DNA of 40,403 nt from NCBI RefSeq assembly GCF_006345805.1, contig NW_021835402.1, positions 1-40,403 of the forward strand. The letters are read 5' to 3'. Below, piece after piece: positions 3,583-40,403 of this stretch (positions are counted from its first letter, which is position 1; each line of letters starts with the position of its first letter). Origin of the DNA: Octopus sinensis. Lineage: Eukaryota. A program made the translations under genes and the position numbers. The notes below the pieces were generated by a model. It saw nothing but the letters and a program-made list of their open reading frames with translations. It was not told the DNA's origin and did not search any database.

Positions 3583-3990
3583 AGGTGCAAGAGTGACTTT
3601 GTGGTAAGTAGCTTGCTTACCGACCACAGGTTCTGGGTTCAGTCCCACTGCGTGGCACCTTGGGCAAGTGTCTTCTACTATAGCCTCGGGCCGACTAAAG
3701 CCTTGTGAGTGGATTTGGTAGACGGAAACTGAAAGAAGCCCGTCGTATATATATATATATATATATGTGTGTGTATATATGTGTGTGTGTGTATGTTTGT
3801 GTGTCTGTGTTTGTCCCCCCAACATCGCTTGACAACCGATGCTGGTGTGTTTACGTCCCGTTACTTAGGGATTTGGCAAAACGAATAAGTATTAGGTTCA
3901 CAAAGAATAAGTCCTGGGGCCGATTAGTTCGACTAAAAGGCGGTACTCCAGCATGGCCGCAGTCAAATGACTGAAACAAGTAAAAGAATA
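3583..3990 (+). mobile_element. SINE family B (tRNA-derived head, internal TA/TG tract)
   Basis: Box A-like (GTGACTTTGTGG) and box B-like (GGTTCAGTCCC) motifs. Body recurs at 2905, 4583, 6813 and 34615. Probably one of the described Octopus OK/OR families; assignment needs a SINEBase/Repbase comparison. Confidence 0.9.
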
Positions 3991-6812: not shown

Positions 6813-7193
6813 TACAGGAGTGGCTGTTCGGTTAGAAGATTGCTTCCCAACCACAAGATTCGGGGTTCAGTTCCACTGCGTGGCACCTTGGGCAATTTTC
6901 TTCTACTAAAGTCTTGTGAGTGGATTCGGTAGACGGAATCTGGAAGAAGCTCGTCATATATATTATATATATATATATTTGTGTCTGTTTGTGTGTGGGT
7001 GTGTCTGTGTCTATGTGTATGCCTATGTCTGTGTTTGTAACCCCGCCATCACTTGGCAACCGATGCTGGTGTCTTTATGTTCCCGTACCTTACTGGTTCG
7101 GAAAAAGAATAGTTACTGGGGTTGATTTCCTTGAATAACAACCTGATAATTAAGGTGGTGCTCTAGCATGGCCGCAGCCAAATGTCTGAAACA
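6813..7193 (+). mobile_element. SINE family B, diverged
   Basis: Head GGAGTGGCTGTTCGGTTAG...GGTTCAGTTCC and tail GCATGGCCGCAGCCAAATGTCTGAAACA. Confidence 0.85.
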
Positions 7194-7233
7194 ATGTTGA
7201 ATACACTGTATGAAAGAATACACTGTATGTATG

Positions 7234-7261
<28 letters not shown>

Positions 7262-7264
<3 letters not shown>

Positions 7265-7550
7265 TGCTCAAAAGATTACTGACAAATACAAATCTATATA
7301 CACCAACCACAAAACCAGCGGTTTACAAAAATGTGGACATCCAAACTGTGGAACATGCCCCAACATACTGGAAGGCTCGGAATTCCAATTCAAACAAGGA
7401 AAGAAGTTCACAATTAAGACCAACTTCACTCGTGCTTTGGAGAACTTTGTTTATGTTATAACGTGTTCATGTTGTGGACACATCCATATTGGACAGACTA
7501 GGATGTCCCTTAGACGAAGAATCACACTGCATAAGGAAGTAAATCATTGA
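7262..7550 (+). mobile_element. Penelope-like element GIY-YIG endonuclease fragment
   Basis: CGHPNCGTCPNI...FVYVITCSCCGHIHIGQTRMSLRRRITLH fits the PLE GIY-YIG pattern (VY.ITC..C...YIGQT...L..R...H). Confidence 0.85.
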
Positions 7551-8118
7551 ATAATATATAGTATATTGACTAGTTATTATTTTCTTCACGCTAGCCCACT
7601 TGGAGCAAAAAATTTCTAAATAATTTCTTACTACCCTGAAATTTATTAATAATGATTTTTTGGCTAATTTTGGAAGAAAATCAGCATTTTTTATATTTGC
7701 TGCTGATAAAAAAACTGCGCTTGTGCGGCGGGTTTGTAAAAATTATAACATGTAAGCACGTGGCATGTTCTGTATTGCCTCGTATTTATATATTAATCTT
7801 GGCTTTCCTGCTGATGATAGCTGCGCGTAGCAAATTATTTTATTTGGCGAAGATAGCTTGAAACCATGGTACAGGAAATAGATGGTAAATGTTTATATTT
7901 TTCATTCCCTTTTGAAATTACCCATAATAGTGGTTTGGATTTTAACTACTCCTTCTAGCGGATTAGATGTCCTATTATGGCCATATCTTATGTGTTTAAG
8001 TATACACTGTATTTATATGAATAATATATAGTCTATTGACTAGTTATTTTTCTTCAAGCTAGACCTCTGGTAGCAAAAAATTTCTAAATATTTTTTACTA
8101 ACCTGAAATTTATTAATA
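7548..8118 (+). mobile_element. PLE pseudo-LTR-like region with ~100-bp direct repeats (7548-7650 and 8018-8118), containing a hammerhead
   Basis: TGAATAATATATAGT.TATTGACTAGTTATT...CTGAAATTTATTAATA occurs twice, 470 bp apart. Confidence 0.7.
7804..7878 (+). ncRNA. Minimal type I hammerhead ribozyme (canonical core, weakened helix II)
   Basis: TTTCCTG / CTGATGA / TAGCT...AGCTT / GAAA / CCATGG / TA / CAGGAAA. Helix I is 7 bp perfect, helix III is palindromic (ACCATGGT), predicted cleavage after 7871, 10.1:11.1 is U-U. Confidence 0.8.
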
Positions 8119-8119
8119 T

Positions 8120-8355
8120 AGGTATAGATATTTATATATATATACATATATGTATATAAATATATATATATATACATATATATATACATATATATATAAT
8201 ATATCCATTATGTATGTGTATATATATCTGTGTATGTATATATATTTATGTATATAAACAAATGTATATGTTTATGTATATATATGTATGTCTATATGCA
8301 TGTCTACGCAAATATATATGTGCTTATATGTTGTTGCGTGTTTGCACTATATGTA

Positions 8356-10258: not shown

Positions 10259-13200
10259 TCACTTTCTTTTCAAGTGGTACTTGAAGAAGTTGATGAGAGA
10301 TTGACCAGAGAGGAAAGTGTTTGTCTCCAATCCTTTCAGACGCGTCCACCAGATACATTCTTTCGCCATAGCCACAAGGATGATGAAAATAGCTCTTCCT
10401 TCCCGTTTGAAGGAAGGAGGCGTGACAATATTGACGATAGACTCAGCTGATAAACCGACTCGTCCCACACGTGACAGCAGTTGTTCGACATAAGCCCACA
10501 GGTCGGAAATTGTTGGACACTGAACGAGTGCGTGCAGAACGGTTTCGTCGCTCTGACCGCATCTCGGGCAGGTCGGCCCCGTGTTTCTCGAGCCGTGTCT
10601 GTAGAGCTTATCCCGAACGGGTAGCGCTTCTCGGTAGCACTGCCAGGCCAGGGATCTCTGGAAGTTGTCCATGGGCCCTGGCCCGAAAGTCGTCCCGAAC
10701 AGGCGGGTCAGGTACTCCTCGTCGACGTCCAGGTTCGCCCCGAGCTCGTCGTCGTACCTCCCCTCCACTAAACCCCTATAGAATGCTTTGGTTGTGTTGA
10801 AGTCACTTAAGGTCGACCCAGGACGGCAGAGTTGCTTGAGAGCAACGCGACACTCGCGGTGCCATTCGCCCTTCCTCGGCCTCTTTTGATCCACGACTGC
10901 AGTTCGGTCATGGAGACGAGCTGCGGGAAAGCGTGCCTCACAAACGGCGACCACACCTGTTCACCGTCGTCTACATAGAGCCAGAGATGTCGCAGTCTCA
11001 GCGCGTGTCTGCGCATCATCAACCACGGCATGCCCAGCCCTCCTTTTAACGGGTGTTGACAGCAAATGGATCGCCTGACCATCGGGACGCATCCTTTCCA
11101 CAAGAAGCGAAAGAGGATGCGTTGTAGTTTGGTGATGGTAGGGTCGGGACAAGGTACGACGGTCAGGCGGTGGTAGTAGATGACGGACGCGATGTACGTG
11201 TTCGCCACCTCCGCTCGACCTTTTAGGGACAGTTTCCTCTCGGCCCATTGCCGGGCGAGAGTGACCACCCTACTCGTTATCTCGTTCCAGTTCTTCTCCA
11301 CTTGGAGGTCCGGACCAAACCAGACCCCGAGCAACTCAACCGGGCCGTCGGTCCAGCGTCCCACGACGGAGGCGCTGGTGGACGGCATGGGCTTGCTTCT
11401 CCAGGTGCCTAGTCGCAAGCCCACTGACTTTTCCCGGTTGATTTTCGCTCCTGTCACCGCTTCGTAGTTTTTCAGTGTCTCGCCGACCAGCTCGATGTGC
11501 TCGTGGCTAGACACTATGACGGTGACGTCGTCCGCGTATGCAGACACGCTCGTCCCGCATCCCAATTCTCGCGGGATGCCCCTTAGAGTCGCCAGCTTCC
11601 GCAGTAGTGGCTCAAGAGTCAATACGTATAGAAGCGCCGAGAGGGGGCATCCCTGACGGACCGAACGTGCAATGTCGAAAGGTCTCGATAGATGTCCATT
11701 TACGCGAATTACCGAACGGATGCCTCTGTACAAGGCAGCTATCCAGCCGCGGAAGACGGGACCGAAACCAGCCGCTCTCAGGACTGCCTCCAAGTATCGA
11801 TGGTCTACCCTATCAAAGGCTTTTGATTGATCCAAGTTGATCAGGGCCCCACCCATGCCAGGTTCGTTAACTACCCTGTCTATGATGTAGCGCATCAGAT
11901 GGAGGTTGTCATGGATGGTCCGGCCTGGCACGGCGCATGTTTGCGCCTTGTCGACCAGTTTCTCGATGACAAGCGCCAACCTCTTGGCTAGCACCTTGGC
12001 CAAAATTTTCAAGTCTGCATTAAGCAGAGTGATGGGCCTAAAGTTATCTATTACATTTCCCTTGTTTAGATCTTTCTTCAGCAGTGTTACGGCTCCTCGG
12101 CTCACAAAACCAGGAATGCTCCCGTTTTGCTGCCAGTTGCAGTACACCGCCGCCAAGAGATCTCCAAACAAGTCTGGCATACAATTGTAAAGCTCGTAGG
12201 GTAGACCATCCAAACCCGGTGATTTGTCCCTCGAGCATTCTGCCATCGCTTCCCGCACTTCCGCCGCCGTGATGGCACCTTCGCAGCACCCTGCCTTCTT
12301 GTCGAGAGTCGTGGTAGGCTATGTAGGTAGGCACTGAAGTCCACCCTACGTTCTTGCCCTCCACTCGTTCCGAACAGTCGGGCAAAATGCTGCTGAAAGG
12401 CCTCACACATTTTACTTGGCTCGAGCAATTCGCGCCCCTGTTCATCTACCAGTGACCGAATGGTGGCTTTGTTGCCCTGTTGCGCCTCTGCCACCCGGGC
12501 CTCTCTCGCGGCTCCAACACCTTCGTTCCTTAGAGCACGCATCCTAGCTCTGACAGCACATCCTTCGTGTTTGGCGTTGAAGTGTTGGTCGAGGGCCAAC
12601 CTCGCCGCCAAAACGTCGGATGCGATGCCGCTTCTAATTGCCTCTTCTAGCTTCTTAACTAGCTCACCCTCTACTCTATTTCTATCTATGGCTAGTGCTT
12701 TGCTGTACCTAATCGCTTCTGCTTTTACTGCTCTCTTGAGGGCAAACCACCATTTGTTGTTGATGATGGCTCCCGTCAAAGCCCTCTTTACTAGTGTGCT
12801 AATCCGGTCTCTGAAAACTTGTCTCGATGGGAAAGACGCGTTTAGTTTCCAGTATCCGGGACCCTGCCTAAGTGTCTTACCTAAGTCTAGCGTACATGTC
12901 ACAAGTTTGTGATCCGTGTAGCTGACTATGTGGAATTGTGGACATCCTATGCTATCTCTATCTACTGTCCTACACAGTATCCTATCTAGATACGATCTCG
13001 ACGACCCGATGCGGTTGCTCCATGTCCACGTTGGCGCATTCGGGTGGTCTAGTCGAAACCTGTCAGACAGTTGAAAGCGTCTGAGCAGGTCTCTGAGGCA
13101 TTTGCATCCCCGTCTATTCCTATCTCTACCCACGTAGTCTACATGCGTGTCCAAGGTAGCATTCCAATCCCCCACTAAGAGTAAAGGACGAGACGTTCCC

Positions 13201-13589
13201 AAGAAAACTTCTAGACGTTGAAAGAAATCCGCCCGACCTGTTAAGGGCGGTGCGTAAACTGATACGAGCCGAAAAGCGCACCCATTGCTGCCGTCGACAT
13301 CCAGGACGACCAGTCTACCCTCCGGGTCTACGAATATTGTCCTTACATTGAGATCCAGACTCTTGTGAAAAAGTACCGCGGTGCCACTACCGCCCATTCT
13401 CGGCAGACAGGGGGAAAAATAAATGTTGAACTGTCCGCCAAACATGGTCTTTAGGGCCCGCGGATTGTGGAGTCTGGTCTCGCTTATGGCTATGATTTCT
13501 AACTTATGTGACTTTATGTCATTTAAGAGGTACCCTTGTTTCCAAGGGGACCCCAAGCCACGCGCATTTACACAACCAATCTTGATCAT
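10259..13589 (-). pseudogene. Tx1 ORF2: APE endonuclease, reverse transcriptase and C-terminal zinc knuckle; two apparent 1-nt frameshifts (~12300, ~10885)
   Basis: APE: CVNARG, ISETR, LLVGDWN, SYLDRI, TDH. RT: KSPGLDG, FRPITLLN, LDQSKAFDRV, VRQGCPLS, YADD. Knuckle: CPRCGQSDETVLHALVQC. Confidence 0.93.
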
Positions 13590-19458: not shown

Positions 19459-19459
<1 letters not shown>

Positions 19460-19562
19460 GGCGCAGGCATGTCCGTGTGGTAAGAAGCTTGCTTTCCCAA
19501 CCACATAGTTCGGGGTTCAGTCCTACTGCGTGGCACCTTGGGCAAGGGTTTTCTACTATAGG
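19459..19562 (+). mobile_element. SINE family B head only
   Basis: GCGCAGGCATGTCCGTGTGGTAAGAAGCTTGC...GGTTCAGTCC...GGCACCTTGGGCAAG. Confidence 0.85.
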
Positions 19563-19564
19563 TT

Positions 19565-19790
19565 CTTATAAATTAACTCTGAAATCGGGTCCGATATGAT
19601 AATAACGGAATTTTTTAGTAATTTCCGTCGGCTTTCTTTGAGCCACGTGCTTGTAGTGATGAATTACATTGTTATGGGCGATATGTCTATTTTCAGCATA
19701 TTTGCCATTAGAATTTTTTTTTCTTTTGCCCTTGTTTATAAGTTGTTTATAAATTTAACCATTAAAGTTATTTTTTAATATGCTGGCCAT
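19565..19790 (+). mobile_element. PLE pLTR-like fragment homologous to 38495-38660, carrying only the 3' half of a hammerhead
   Basis: TTAACTCT GAAA TCGG GT CCGA TA...TAATAACG.ATTTTTT...TTTTCAGCATATTTGCCATTAGAATTTTT..CTTTTGCCCTT matches the 38.5-kb unit. Confidence 0.7.
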
Positions 19791-20029
19791 TGCTAGAATT
19801 ATTTTCGAAAATTTTATCCTATATTATATATATATATATACTATATATAATATATATATATTGTATTATTATGTATGTAATGTAAGTATGTATGCGCGAA
19901 TGTATGTATAGGTATAATAAATATGCGCGTACGAGGTACATAGCAGAGGTTTTTTGAAGAGAGGTAGTTGAGTCGTTTTTAGGAGAGGTAGTTATAACTG
20001 ACCCAATTTATAGTAATTTCTATATATCA

Positions 20030-38292: not shown

Positions 38293-38347
<55 letters not shown>

Positions 38348-38466
38348 TATATATATCGACTAGAAATTTTTTCTATTTTGGATATATTTGGGGTACTTAG
38401 GTCTGCTCAGGACTTAGTGCTTGTTTTTTCCATGGGTATGAGTAAGTATTTCACTTATATCTCGCG

Positions 38467-38531
38467 TATTTGCCGCTGAAGAGGGGAAAATTTATATTAA
38501 TTAACCCCGAAATTGGACCAATACGGTAATA
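38467..38531 (+). ncRNA. Minimal type I hammerhead ribozyme with intact canonical core
   Basis: TATTTGCCG / CTGAAGA (38476-38482) / GGGG...CCCC / GAAA (38509-38512) / TTGGACCAA / TA / CGGTAATA. G10.1:C11.1, predicted cleavage after 38523. Confidence 0.85.
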
Positions 38532-38690
38532 ACGAATTTTTTTAAGAGATTTCTATCGGTTTGTTTTCGAGACGCATAAATTATAATGGTTATTGAAAAG
38601 TTTTGTCTTATTTTCGGCATATTTGGCATTAGAATTTTTCTTTTGCCCTTATCTTGTAAATTAAATACTATATATATATATATATCATAT

Positions 38691-38736
<46 letters not shown>

Positions 38737-38845
38737 ATTAAATATATATACTATTATATATATACTAATATATTATATATATATATATATATACATATAG
38801 AATCTTAATAACTAGTCTCTCTCTCTAAAGAGAACAGCGGCAGCG

Positions 38846-38855
38846 TTCCCGGGAA
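38846..38855. promoter_or_regulatory. Candidate STAT-binding palindrome TTCCCGGGAA (TTC-N4-GAA)
   Basis: Perfect palindrome in unique sequence ~280 bp upstream of the first in-frame SOCS ATG. Confidence 0.4.
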
Positions 38856-39135
38856 AGGCCACATTAATCATGCTGGAAAGAGCAAATCATTACTGTCCAC
38901 CATCGATCGCCCATTCGTCCATTTTTCTGCTGTGGCAGTGAACTGTCCTCGTCAGTATCGTTGAGCTCCACGAGCGACAAACTGCTACACTTTCGTTAAC
39001 TTCAGGCTCCTCGCAGTCATAGTAGTGAAACCGATCTTGTTGAAGCAGCATGCCCTATCTGACTTCCTACAGATTGAACAAACAAAAAACAACACATTTT
39101 GGCCCTCTTCGTGCCAACATTGCGGATACAAACAA

Positions 39136-40371
39136 ATGTCGGTATGGAAGCTGCTTCAGGCTCATGTTCAGGTATCGCCACCAAAGAACAGACACAAGAA
39201 ACCTTGGTCTATCAAATTTCGAGACAAACAATCTAAGCAGTCCCGCTACATGGGTTACTCACAACCCTGTGTCGGAACTTCTAGATGCTCAAACTTTTCC
39301 AGTTGTGAACACCAGCTGATACTGGCCACTTGTTCACAACGACCATCATCTTCCAACTTCATGTTGACTCCATCTTGCCAAATCTCCACAAACACTGTCT
39401 TGCGTTTACCGAAGAGTCGCCATCATCGGAAGCACCATTCAAAGAAAACTTTATTCAGTCCTGTCGACAAGCAGCACCATCGAATGTCAGCCAGGCAGTT
39501 TGCTGGATCTTTAAACAACATTAACAACACTTCGAGTTCAGTTGGCTGTTCCACTGATAACATCGGCACAACTTGTCATCAACAACAGCAACAGGAGGGT
39601 CAACAAACTAGTTCCAGAATTGCTGGAAGCCACGTAGATAGAAATACATTTTGTGCATGCCGCAATTTTCGGTCTGTTTCCACATTGGCACCTAACGACC
39701 AACTCTGCTCGTCGTTCCAGCAGAGCTGTTCTCTGCAGGCTAATCCCGGAAGCCACAGCCAGTTCTCTCTAGATTATTTCAACGACGACGACTTCAACGA
39801 TGCACCCATTCAGGATTACCCACCACACGAAGCTACCAACAGCGACAGCTACCAGCGTGTTCACAGTCGTGTCGAGTACACCCACTGTCTAGTGCCTGAC
39901 CTGCAGCAGATTGCCAACTGCAGTTTTTACTGGGGGGTTATGGATCGGTACGAAGCAGAGAACCTGCTTGACAACAAAGCCGAGGGAACATTTCTGTTGC
40001 GAGACAGTGCACAGGAGGATTTTCTTTTCTCCGTCAGTTTTCGGCGTTATGGAAGGTCTCTTCACGCACGCATTGAGCAGTGCAACCACAAGTTTAGTTT
40101 CGATTGCCATGACCCGGGCGTCTTTGCAGCTGGTACCGTCTGCCGCCTGATAGAACATTACAAAGACCCCAGCTGTTGCATGTTCTTCGAACCAATGCTT
40201 ACTCGACCCCTCACCAGAACTTATCCATTCTCCTTGCAGCATCTGTGCAGAGCTGCCATCTGTAGCTTTATCACTTACGACAAAGTGTCGGAGCTTCCCC
40301 TCCCACTAGCCTTAAAAGACTTCCTCAAGTATTATCATTACAAAATGAAGGTTACTGAAAAGCATTTCTAA
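39136..40371 (+). CDS. SOCS5: Suppressor of cytokine signalling 4/5-type protein (long disordered N-terminus, SH2 domain, SOCS box)
   Basis: [15 protein letters not shown]...[11 protein letters not shown]...[32 protein letters not shown]...CMFFEPML...[10 protein letters not shown]...[17 protein letters not shown] closely follows vertebrate SOCS4/5 and Drosophila Socs36E. SH2 starts ~39931. First in-frame ATG is 39136; the frame is open from 38965, and a possible acceptor AG at 39071-39072 means an upstream exon cannot be excluded. Confidence 0.93.
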
Positions 40372-40403
40372 TAGATCAGACATTTTAAACAGTCACAATT
40401 TCC

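Follow-up and report, generated by a model that had tools for sequence, protein, structure and literature searches.

Gene and repeat content of the contig

The stretch of DNA analysed here (the window) is the entire unplaced contig VCDQ01005021.1 (40,403 bp) of the Octopus sinensis assembly GCA_006345805.1. It ends in a SOCS5-like coding exon, upstream of which lie transposon remnants, TA microsatellites and hammerhead ribozyme motifs (Table 1). The gene model at 39136-40371 encodes 411 aa with an SH2 domain and a SOCS box, and over 97% of its length this ORF shows 100% identity to an O. sinensis SOCS5-like protein. The complete SOCS5-like gene, with a coding range of about 74 kb, is carried by a different contig (L001) of this assembly; syntenic chromosomal loci are found in O. 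vulgaris (L002) and O. bimaculoides (L004), and colinearity between L001 and L002 extends over the entire locus.

Among the transposons, a near-intact non-LTR (LINE) element, with no relation to the hammerhead units described below, occupies 10259-13589 on the minus strand; it comprises an Exo_endo_phos endonuclease ORF of 495 aa, an RVT_1 ORF of 483 aa and a zf-RVT tail. The only trace of a Penelope-like element (PLE) in the window is a GIY-YIG endonuclease remnant. An exhaustive HMMER search returned 727 homologues of the remnant, the long ones of about 745 aa with RVT_1 and, at the C terminus, a GIY-YIG domain, the architecture of PLEs; the remnant itself had no Pfam match, and the endonuclease fragment retrieved nothing in a word-indexed protein search. 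A search seeded with the best full-length relative yielded PLEs from bivalves and none from Octopus, so that the autonomous Octopus partner was not found. Exact look-ups of the transposon ORFs of the window, and of the small ORFs of the hammerhead-bearing unit (a), aimed at other assemblies of this DNA, gave no match in the collection searched, and the genomic site to which window 1-38800 truly belongs was not located. Upstream of the remnant, a full SINE copy (6815-7194) is followed by a TA tract and then by the remnant, and the Logan transcript contig L005 (62-523) carries remnant-like sequence after the last 30 nt of that SINE; the order of SINE and endonuclease therefore recurs.

Table 1. 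Positions of the features discussed in the text (window coordinates unless a locus is named)
Feature	Position	Strand	Basis or remark
PLE GIY-YIG endonuclease remnant, CX5CXXC linker	7263-7547	+	after a (TA)n tract
Motif (d)	7804-7878	+	second complete hammerhead in the window
tRNA-derived SINE head, 104 nt	19459-19562	+	fused directly to copy 2
Partial family copy 2, ~70% identical to unit (a)	19563-19735	+	blastn E=2.8e-12; nhmmer E=6e-10; alignment
(AT)31 microsatellite	38296-38356	.	TRF and sequence; 5' of unit (a)
Hammerhead-bearing unit (a), 312 bp, GC ~0.27	38357-38668	+	microsatellites on both sides
Helix I of motif (a), 5' strand	38465-38475	+	stem 38470-38475; outer extension 38465-38467
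Core box CUGAAGA (C3-A9)	38476-38482	+	sequence and descriptor scan
Helix II	38483-38508	+	fold prediction
GAAA box, helix III and A17	38509-38523	+	near-palindrome AUUGGACCAAU; sequence, scan and fold
Helix I of motif (a), 3' strand	38524-38534	+	stem 38524-38529; outer extension 38532-38534
(TA)67 imperfect microsatellite	38669-38799	.	TRF; 3' of unit (a)
Redundant copy of the last SOCS5-like coding exon	38800-40403	+	error-rich to 39200, then identical to the main locus
Motif (b)	L001 85618-85681 (O. sinensis); L002 79848-79911 (O. vulgaris)		scans
Unit (b), 477 bp, then (TA)n	L001 85324-85800; L002 79553-80029		sequence comparison
Motif (c)	L001 246-291; L002 3702-3747	-	textbook minimal PLE hammerhead

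A complete type I hammerhead in a non-coding unit

The motif at 38470-38529 on the plus strand, hereafter motif (a), was identified by descriptor scan and from the sequence as a complete type I hammerhead. It reads TTGCCG CTGAAGA GGGG-AAAATTTATATTAATTAA-CCCC GAAA TTGGACCAA TA CGGTAA, where AAAATTTATATTAATTAA is 18 nt long. All invariant hammerhead positions are present (C3 to A9, with N7 free; GAA at G12 to A14; A15.1:U16.1; H17), together with three helices, of which helix I is open-ended, and the G10.1:C11.1 pair at the base of helix II. The first-pass annotation had reported an intact canonical hammerhead on the sense strand, and every core position bears this out. The GAAA box begins at 38509 and ends at 38512, U16.1 corresponds to 38522 and A17 to 38523, which places the predicted scissile bond between 38523 and 38524, the position proposed earlier. 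Motif (a) was thereby confirmed as a real hammerhead ribozyme motif, with cleavage as a prediction.

Helix I comprises 6 bp, including one G-U pair, and beyond a 2x2 internal loop 3 further pairs are possible between the outer extensions. Helix II starts with GGGG/CCCC, continues through an AA/AA internal loop into AAUU/AAUU and ends in the hexaloop UAUAUU. Helix III consists of A-U, U-A, U-A and G-C pairs, with A15.1:U16.1 closing, and a GAC loop; the region as a whole (AUUGG-A-CCAAU) is a near-palindrome. The earlier suggestion of an intramolecular or intermolecular helix III agrees with the predicted folds, in which it appears either as 4 bp with the GAC triloop or as a near-palindromic dimer. 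In the monomer, the hammerhead fold was predicted at -15.0 kcal/mol against -16.0 kcal/mol for the minimum-energy fold and accounts for about 5% of the ensemble, and the folding energy of the motif is unremarkable (z = -1.39). The predicted minimum-energy fold of the homodimer is a double hammerhead at -42.5 kcal/mol, as against 2 x -16 kcal/mol for the monomers, with a 10-bp intermolecular helix III in the cofold. Natural type I hammerheads make loop-loop contacts at the sites where the internal loops of helices I and II of motif (a) are located. We speculate that these loops, which follow the 6 bp of helix I and the first 4 bp of helix II, might make such contacts.

The hammerhead lies in a unit (a) that sits exactly between (AT)31 and (TA)67, the former presumably being one half of a (TA)n insertion target. 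The motif is 113 nt from the 5' edge of the unit and 145 nt from its 3' edge, and the unit contains no ORF longer than 42 aa. It occurs in the window as a single unit, with no tandem array, no second flanking hammerhead and no PLE ORF next to 38357-38668. A 25-nt repeat with 76% match between its two ends was considered as a terminal direct repeat, a possible sign of a more-than-unit copy, and was rejected as too weak.

The rarity of the motif was assessed with a purpose-written descriptor scan at three stringencies, two of which demanded helix lengths of at least 5/3/3 and of 6/4/4, and with a null of 20 Mb of first-order Markov sequence of the window's dinucleotide content. Motif (a) was the sole match in the 40-kb window at each of the three stringencies. 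The null gave 0 matches in 20 Mb at both of the named settings, and the loosest descriptor gave 5 in 20 Mb, corresponding to 0.02 per window. A separate, tolerant descriptor, with a null rate of 0.03 per 100 kb, found 2 matches in the 40-kb window and one match each, to a third motif, in the O. sinensis and O. vulgaris loci; against so low a null rate, Octopus DNA is strongly enriched in hammerhead motifs. The Rfam hammerhead models gave no match to motif (a), neither at the gathering score nor, on 38300-38700 (401 nt), at E<=10. Motif (d), which is as complete as (a), was likewise missed, and long inserts in helix II are thus probably beyond the sensitivity of the models. The Rfam result therefore probably reflects the models and does not refute the motif.

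A second family copy fused to a SINE head

Unit (a) belongs to a repeat family, of which the window holds a second, partial copy (copy 2). Copy 2 begins inside helix II and thus contains only the 3' half of the hammerhead, retaining ..CTCT GAAA TCGGGTCCGA TA TGATAA and about 125 nt downstream. Both the GAAA box and the AUA site are kept, and pair 15.3/16.3 of helix III is C-G in copy 2 as against U-A in copy (a), a compensatory change; the comparison covers one homologue, with the 3' half of the motif, and shows this one change in helix III. Beyond the aligned part, non-repeat sequence continues to 19821, and (TA)n follows from 19822.

Immediately upstream, copy 2 is joined to a tRNA-derived SINE head that has 51 copies in the Octopus loci, whereas the tail attached here matches copy (a) only. 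The junction falls within helix II, and we saw a single fusion of this kind. The rest of the SINE, expected downstream of copy 2 in the case of a nested insertion, was looked for and is absent. The chimera at 19459-19821 could be a template-switch product or a SINE with a captured PLE-type tail. A broader possibility is that Octopus harbors families of (TA)n-targeting hammerhead elements whose 3' tail, beginning within the ribozyme, is open to capture by a tRNA-SINE head; we consider this a long shot. If it were true, PLE-type reverse transcriptase and GIY-YIG machinery would mobilise SINE-like elements in cephalopods, and hammerhead-tail modules would form part of the large SINE expansion in cephalopod genomes.

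Other hammerheads in Octopus DNA

Three further hammerheads, (b), (c) and (d), were detected in the window and the SOCS5-like loci. Motif (b), built on the same architecture as (a), has the CUGAAGA box, a 6-bp helix I, a long helix II, a near-palindromic helix III AUCACAGGUGAU and an AUA site. Its host unit (b) is present in O. sinensis and O. vulgaris; the corresponding site in O. bimaculoides (about L004 69664-69830) contains (AT)n and about 110 bp of unrelated sequence between flanks that are both conserved. Unit (b) is therefore a lineage-specific insertion at a TA microsatellite, and as a clean presence/absence case it shows that hammerhead units move into such microsatellites.

Motif (c), located in the region of the adjacent EML-like WD40 gene, has a bulged A after A9 and 6 bp in helix II; its helix III is A-CG-U in O. 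vulgaris, and in O. sinensis the CG has mutated to UG. The homology of O. bimaculoides ends before the motif, and its absence from the O. bimaculoides locus marks it as lineage-specific.

Motif (d) reads TTTCCTG CTGATGA ..AGCT..AGCT. GAAA CCATGG TA CAGGAAA; its helix I has 7 bp, and its helix III contains the palindrome ACCAUGGU. Its unit (d) is non-coding and about 470 bp long (7548-8018), and the first 105 bp recur at 8018-8122 with about 88% identity, giving a 1.2x head-to-tail repeat in a retrozyme- or pseudo-LTR-like arrangement. Unit (d) directly follows the PLE endonuclease remnant and precedes a TA-rich microsatellite. It is not the continuation of the remnant that it abuts, because the homologous copy in L005 diverges at 7538. 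Local alignment with shuffle tests revealed no similarity beyond chance among units (a), (b) and (d) outside the ribozyme core, and they are thus not one sequence family.

The SOCS5-like exon and the contig join

Comparison with the L001, L002 and L004 loci showed that the window matches them solely from 38851 to its end. Between 38800 and 39199 the differences from L001 per 100 bp number 36, 1, 9 and 6, and they then fall to 0 over the final 1,204 bp; 27 of the 52 differences are indels, and the contig ends 32 bp beyond the stop codon. In the real gene, the exon follows the splice acceptor ttttgatacag/GAAGC, and 30.7 kb upstream stands the coding exon before it (MQMCKNTAVAFF...). Neither the splice acceptor nor the upstream exon MQMCKNTAVAFF is present in the window, where (TA)67 stands instead. 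The N-terminal SOCS coding part is frameshifted in the window, and since these frameshifts destroy the real N-terminal part, the apparent start codon at 39136 is a truncation artefact. The error gradient looks like poor consensus at a false join and not like a diverged paralogue. The contact with the upstream 38.8 kb is most economically read as a false join or as a contig end left unpolished, which would make the closeness of hammerhead (a) to SOCS most likely an artefact of genome assembly. The NCBI-annotated 411-aa protein is likely a spurious paralogue in the public O. sinensis annotation. The SOCS exon of contig VCDQ01001861.1 is duplicated at the end of the window, and indel-type errors rise towards 38800.

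Alternative explanations

According to the first-pass annotation, the hammerhead lies about 600 bp before the SOCS start and, if the SOCS pre-mRNA starts upstream, in its last intron or 5' UTR, from where it could cut the nascent transcript or set an alternative 5' end and so regulate SOCS. The distance is right, since the motif is on the strand of the ORF and 613 nt upstream of the ATG, and its core is intact. The gene context is not supported, because agreement with the real locus starts only at 38851, behind the error gradient at the junction, and because the acceptor and upstream exons are missing and the N-terminal part is frameshifted. The 312-bp unit is moreover absent from the true SOCS5-like loci of all three Octopus species, the real loci have no hammerhead within the introns upstream of the coding exon, and the motif belongs to a repeat family; regulation of SOCS by motif (a) is accordingly highly improbable. 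Should the contig instead be correct, the exon would be a real and recent partial duplicate behind unrelated repeat-rich DNA, and the hammerhead would lie upstream of a truncated pseudogene or paralogue. The annotated 411-aa product and an ORF that is intact from 39136, with both SH2 domain and SOCS box, are as expected for such a duplicate; a final 1204 bp without a single difference from the main locus, the clustering of differences, about half of them indels, by the junction, the abrupt end of the contig just past the stop codon, and a protein cluster to which neither O. vulgaris nor O. bimaculoides contributes an equivalent 411-aa product make it very unlikely.

With regard to the motif itself, AT-rich repetitive DNA without ribozyme ancestry might match the hammerhead consensus by chance, which would accommodate the missing Rfam match and the unexceptional folding z-score; in addition, the window was chosen for containing the motif, and extrapolation from the null predicts a few loose-descriptor matches in a genome of about 2.7 Gb. 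This explanation is extremely improbable in view of the empty null at strict settings, the independent hammerheads (b), (c) and (d), whose number in the same ~220 kb of Octopus DNA greatly exceeds the null rate, the retention of GAAA, AUA site and compensated helix III in copy 2, and flanks typical of a mobile element. A closer relative of the preferred reading takes unit (a) for the 3' end (pseudo-LTR or 3' UTR) left by 5' truncation of an autonomous PLE, and not for a dedicated element that is retrozyme-like and non-autonomous. Truncation at the 5' end is frequent among PLE copies, which have the hammerhead near the 3' end (PMC4209133, PMC8557442); this agrees with the position of motif (a) relative to the two edges of its unit, with the further truncation of copy 2 inside the hammerhead and with an endonuclease remnant in the window that starts right after a (TA)n tract. 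No PLE found here, however, has sequence in common with unit (a). The bivalve PLE L010, with hammerheads in both ORF flanks (76-114 and 3857-3895), and the PLE relative L011, with one 54 nt past the ORF, carry compact minimal forms unlike (a), and the similarly built units (b) and (d) are non-coding, of 470-480 bp, and in the case of (d) arranged as a partial tandem. We therefore regard a truncated PLE as unlikely.

A probable small retroelement at a TA microsatellite

Motif (a) is quite probably the hammerhead of a small non-coding retroelement of the PLE or non-LTR retrozyme kind, inserted as a 312-bp unit into (TA)n; on this reading, its distance from the SOCS start codon says nothing about SOCS expression. 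The repeat family, the TA flanks and the presence/absence of unit (b) together point to a mobile element that targets TA microsatellites, and the PLE- or retrozyme-type origin put forward in the first-pass annotation fits this evidence: the family has a second copy, the unit is flanked by TA repeats and the like unit (b) was mobile. PLEs are represented in the window by the endonuclease remnant, and its relatives L010 and L011 carry hammerheads beside or shortly past the ORF, at the places known from the literature. As unit (a) is accompanied by neither a reverse transcriptase/endonuclease ORF nor a second hammerhead, its link to PLE machinery is circumstantial. In an active family, the sense-strand hammerhead would cut longer-than-unit or read-through transcripts at AUA/C (here between 38523 and 38524) and release unit-length RNA with 5'-OH and 2',3'-cyclic-phosphate ends, which a PLE-type reverse transcriptase with a GIY-YIG endonuclease may copy into nicked TA repeats. 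With its near-palindromic helix III, the ribozyme would act weakly as a monomer, through 4 bp and a triloop, or better as a dimer of two copies. The copy at 38357-38668 would cut only when transcribed through; being solitary, it is most likely an inert relic, that is, an ordinary transposon relic and not a gene switch.

Comparison with known hammerhead elements

The link between type I hammerheads and PLE- or retrozyme-type retroelements is already known, and motif (a) adds a cephalopod example. The units of animal non-LTR retrozymes are rich in AT, measure about 170-400 nt and bear type I hammerheads (PMC7229834); retrozymes derive from, or are related to, the pseudo-LTRs of PLEs and are commonly met as dispersed monomers (bioRxiv 10.64898/2026.07.22.740005). 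Unit (a) resembles them (PMC7229834; Li et al. 2026 preprint) in its sense-strand type I hammerhead, in size (312 nt), low GC and lack of coding capacity, in the 6-bp helix I, 4-bp proximal helix II and palindromic helix III, and in its occurrence as a dispersed monomer in a genome that also contains PLEs. It differs in being single, whereas retrozymes are recognised by two or more head-to-tail units, each with a hammerhead, and by linear and circular RNA of unit length, in the 18-nt distal extension of helix II, in a helix III of 4 bp and a triloop instead of the usual 1-2 bp, and in the insertion into (TA)n seen here, which is undescribed for retrozymes.

The type I hammerheads of PLE pseudo-LTRs have a palindromic helix III, act as dimers and occur in mostly solitary and highly variable copies (PMC4209133). 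Motif (a) shares with these minimal forms the G10.1:C11.1 pair and a palindromic 15.2-16.2/loop 3 suited to the dimer, and the solitary, dispersed copies and large variety of sequence within a genome are also alike (PMC4209133). The (TA)n flanks recall the target preference of the PLE clades Neptune and Naiad (PMC8557442). Recent PLE activity has been reported in O. vulgaris (PMC13282606), and Rfam hammerheads have been counted in the giant squid genome (PMC6962438). Unlike the minimal PLE hammerheads, motif (a) has no unpaired base between A9 and G10.1, a helix I of 6 instead of 4-5 bp, a helix III of 4 instead of 0-2 bp, and a helix II of 4 bp, internal loop and 4 bp in place of 6-8 bp, and its unit does not lie in a pseudo-LTR beside a reverse transcriptase/GIY-YIG ORF. 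Motif (c), in the neighbouring Octopus locus, does have the textbook form of the minimal PLE hammerhead, and it looks different from (a). With Rfam Hammerhead_1 (RF00163), motif (a) shares the catalytic core and type I topology, yet the model does not detect it. Since a form with a long helix II insert and a 4-bp palindromic helix III escapes Rfam, such motifs are probably undercounted in mollusc genomes.

Sm-alpha of Schistosoma and related SINE-like elements are short non-autonomous retroposons that carry a type I hammerhead, and the family copy fused to a tRNA-derived SINE head (19459-19735) may be comparable to them. Unlike Sm-alpha, copy 2 has no complete hammerhead left, the 5' half of its ribozyme having given way to the SINE head. 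This fusion and the targeting of TA repeats are the only points possibly worth a genome-wide follow-up.

For the conserved intronic and 3'-UTR hammerheads of amniotes, a role in mRNA processing has been proposed. The idea of SOCS regulation mirrors that role, but motif (a), which has their catalytic core and type I topology, is not conserved at the gene. As the pairing of ribozyme and SOCS rests on an unplaced, probably chimeric contig, it should not enter regulatory hypotheses. In O. sinensis and O. vulgaris, 1.74 kb separate the SOCS5-like stop codon from unit (b), which is situated downstream on the sense strand; if the 3' UTR of the gene extends that far, hammerhead (b), unlike (a), could fall inside the real SOCS mRNA.
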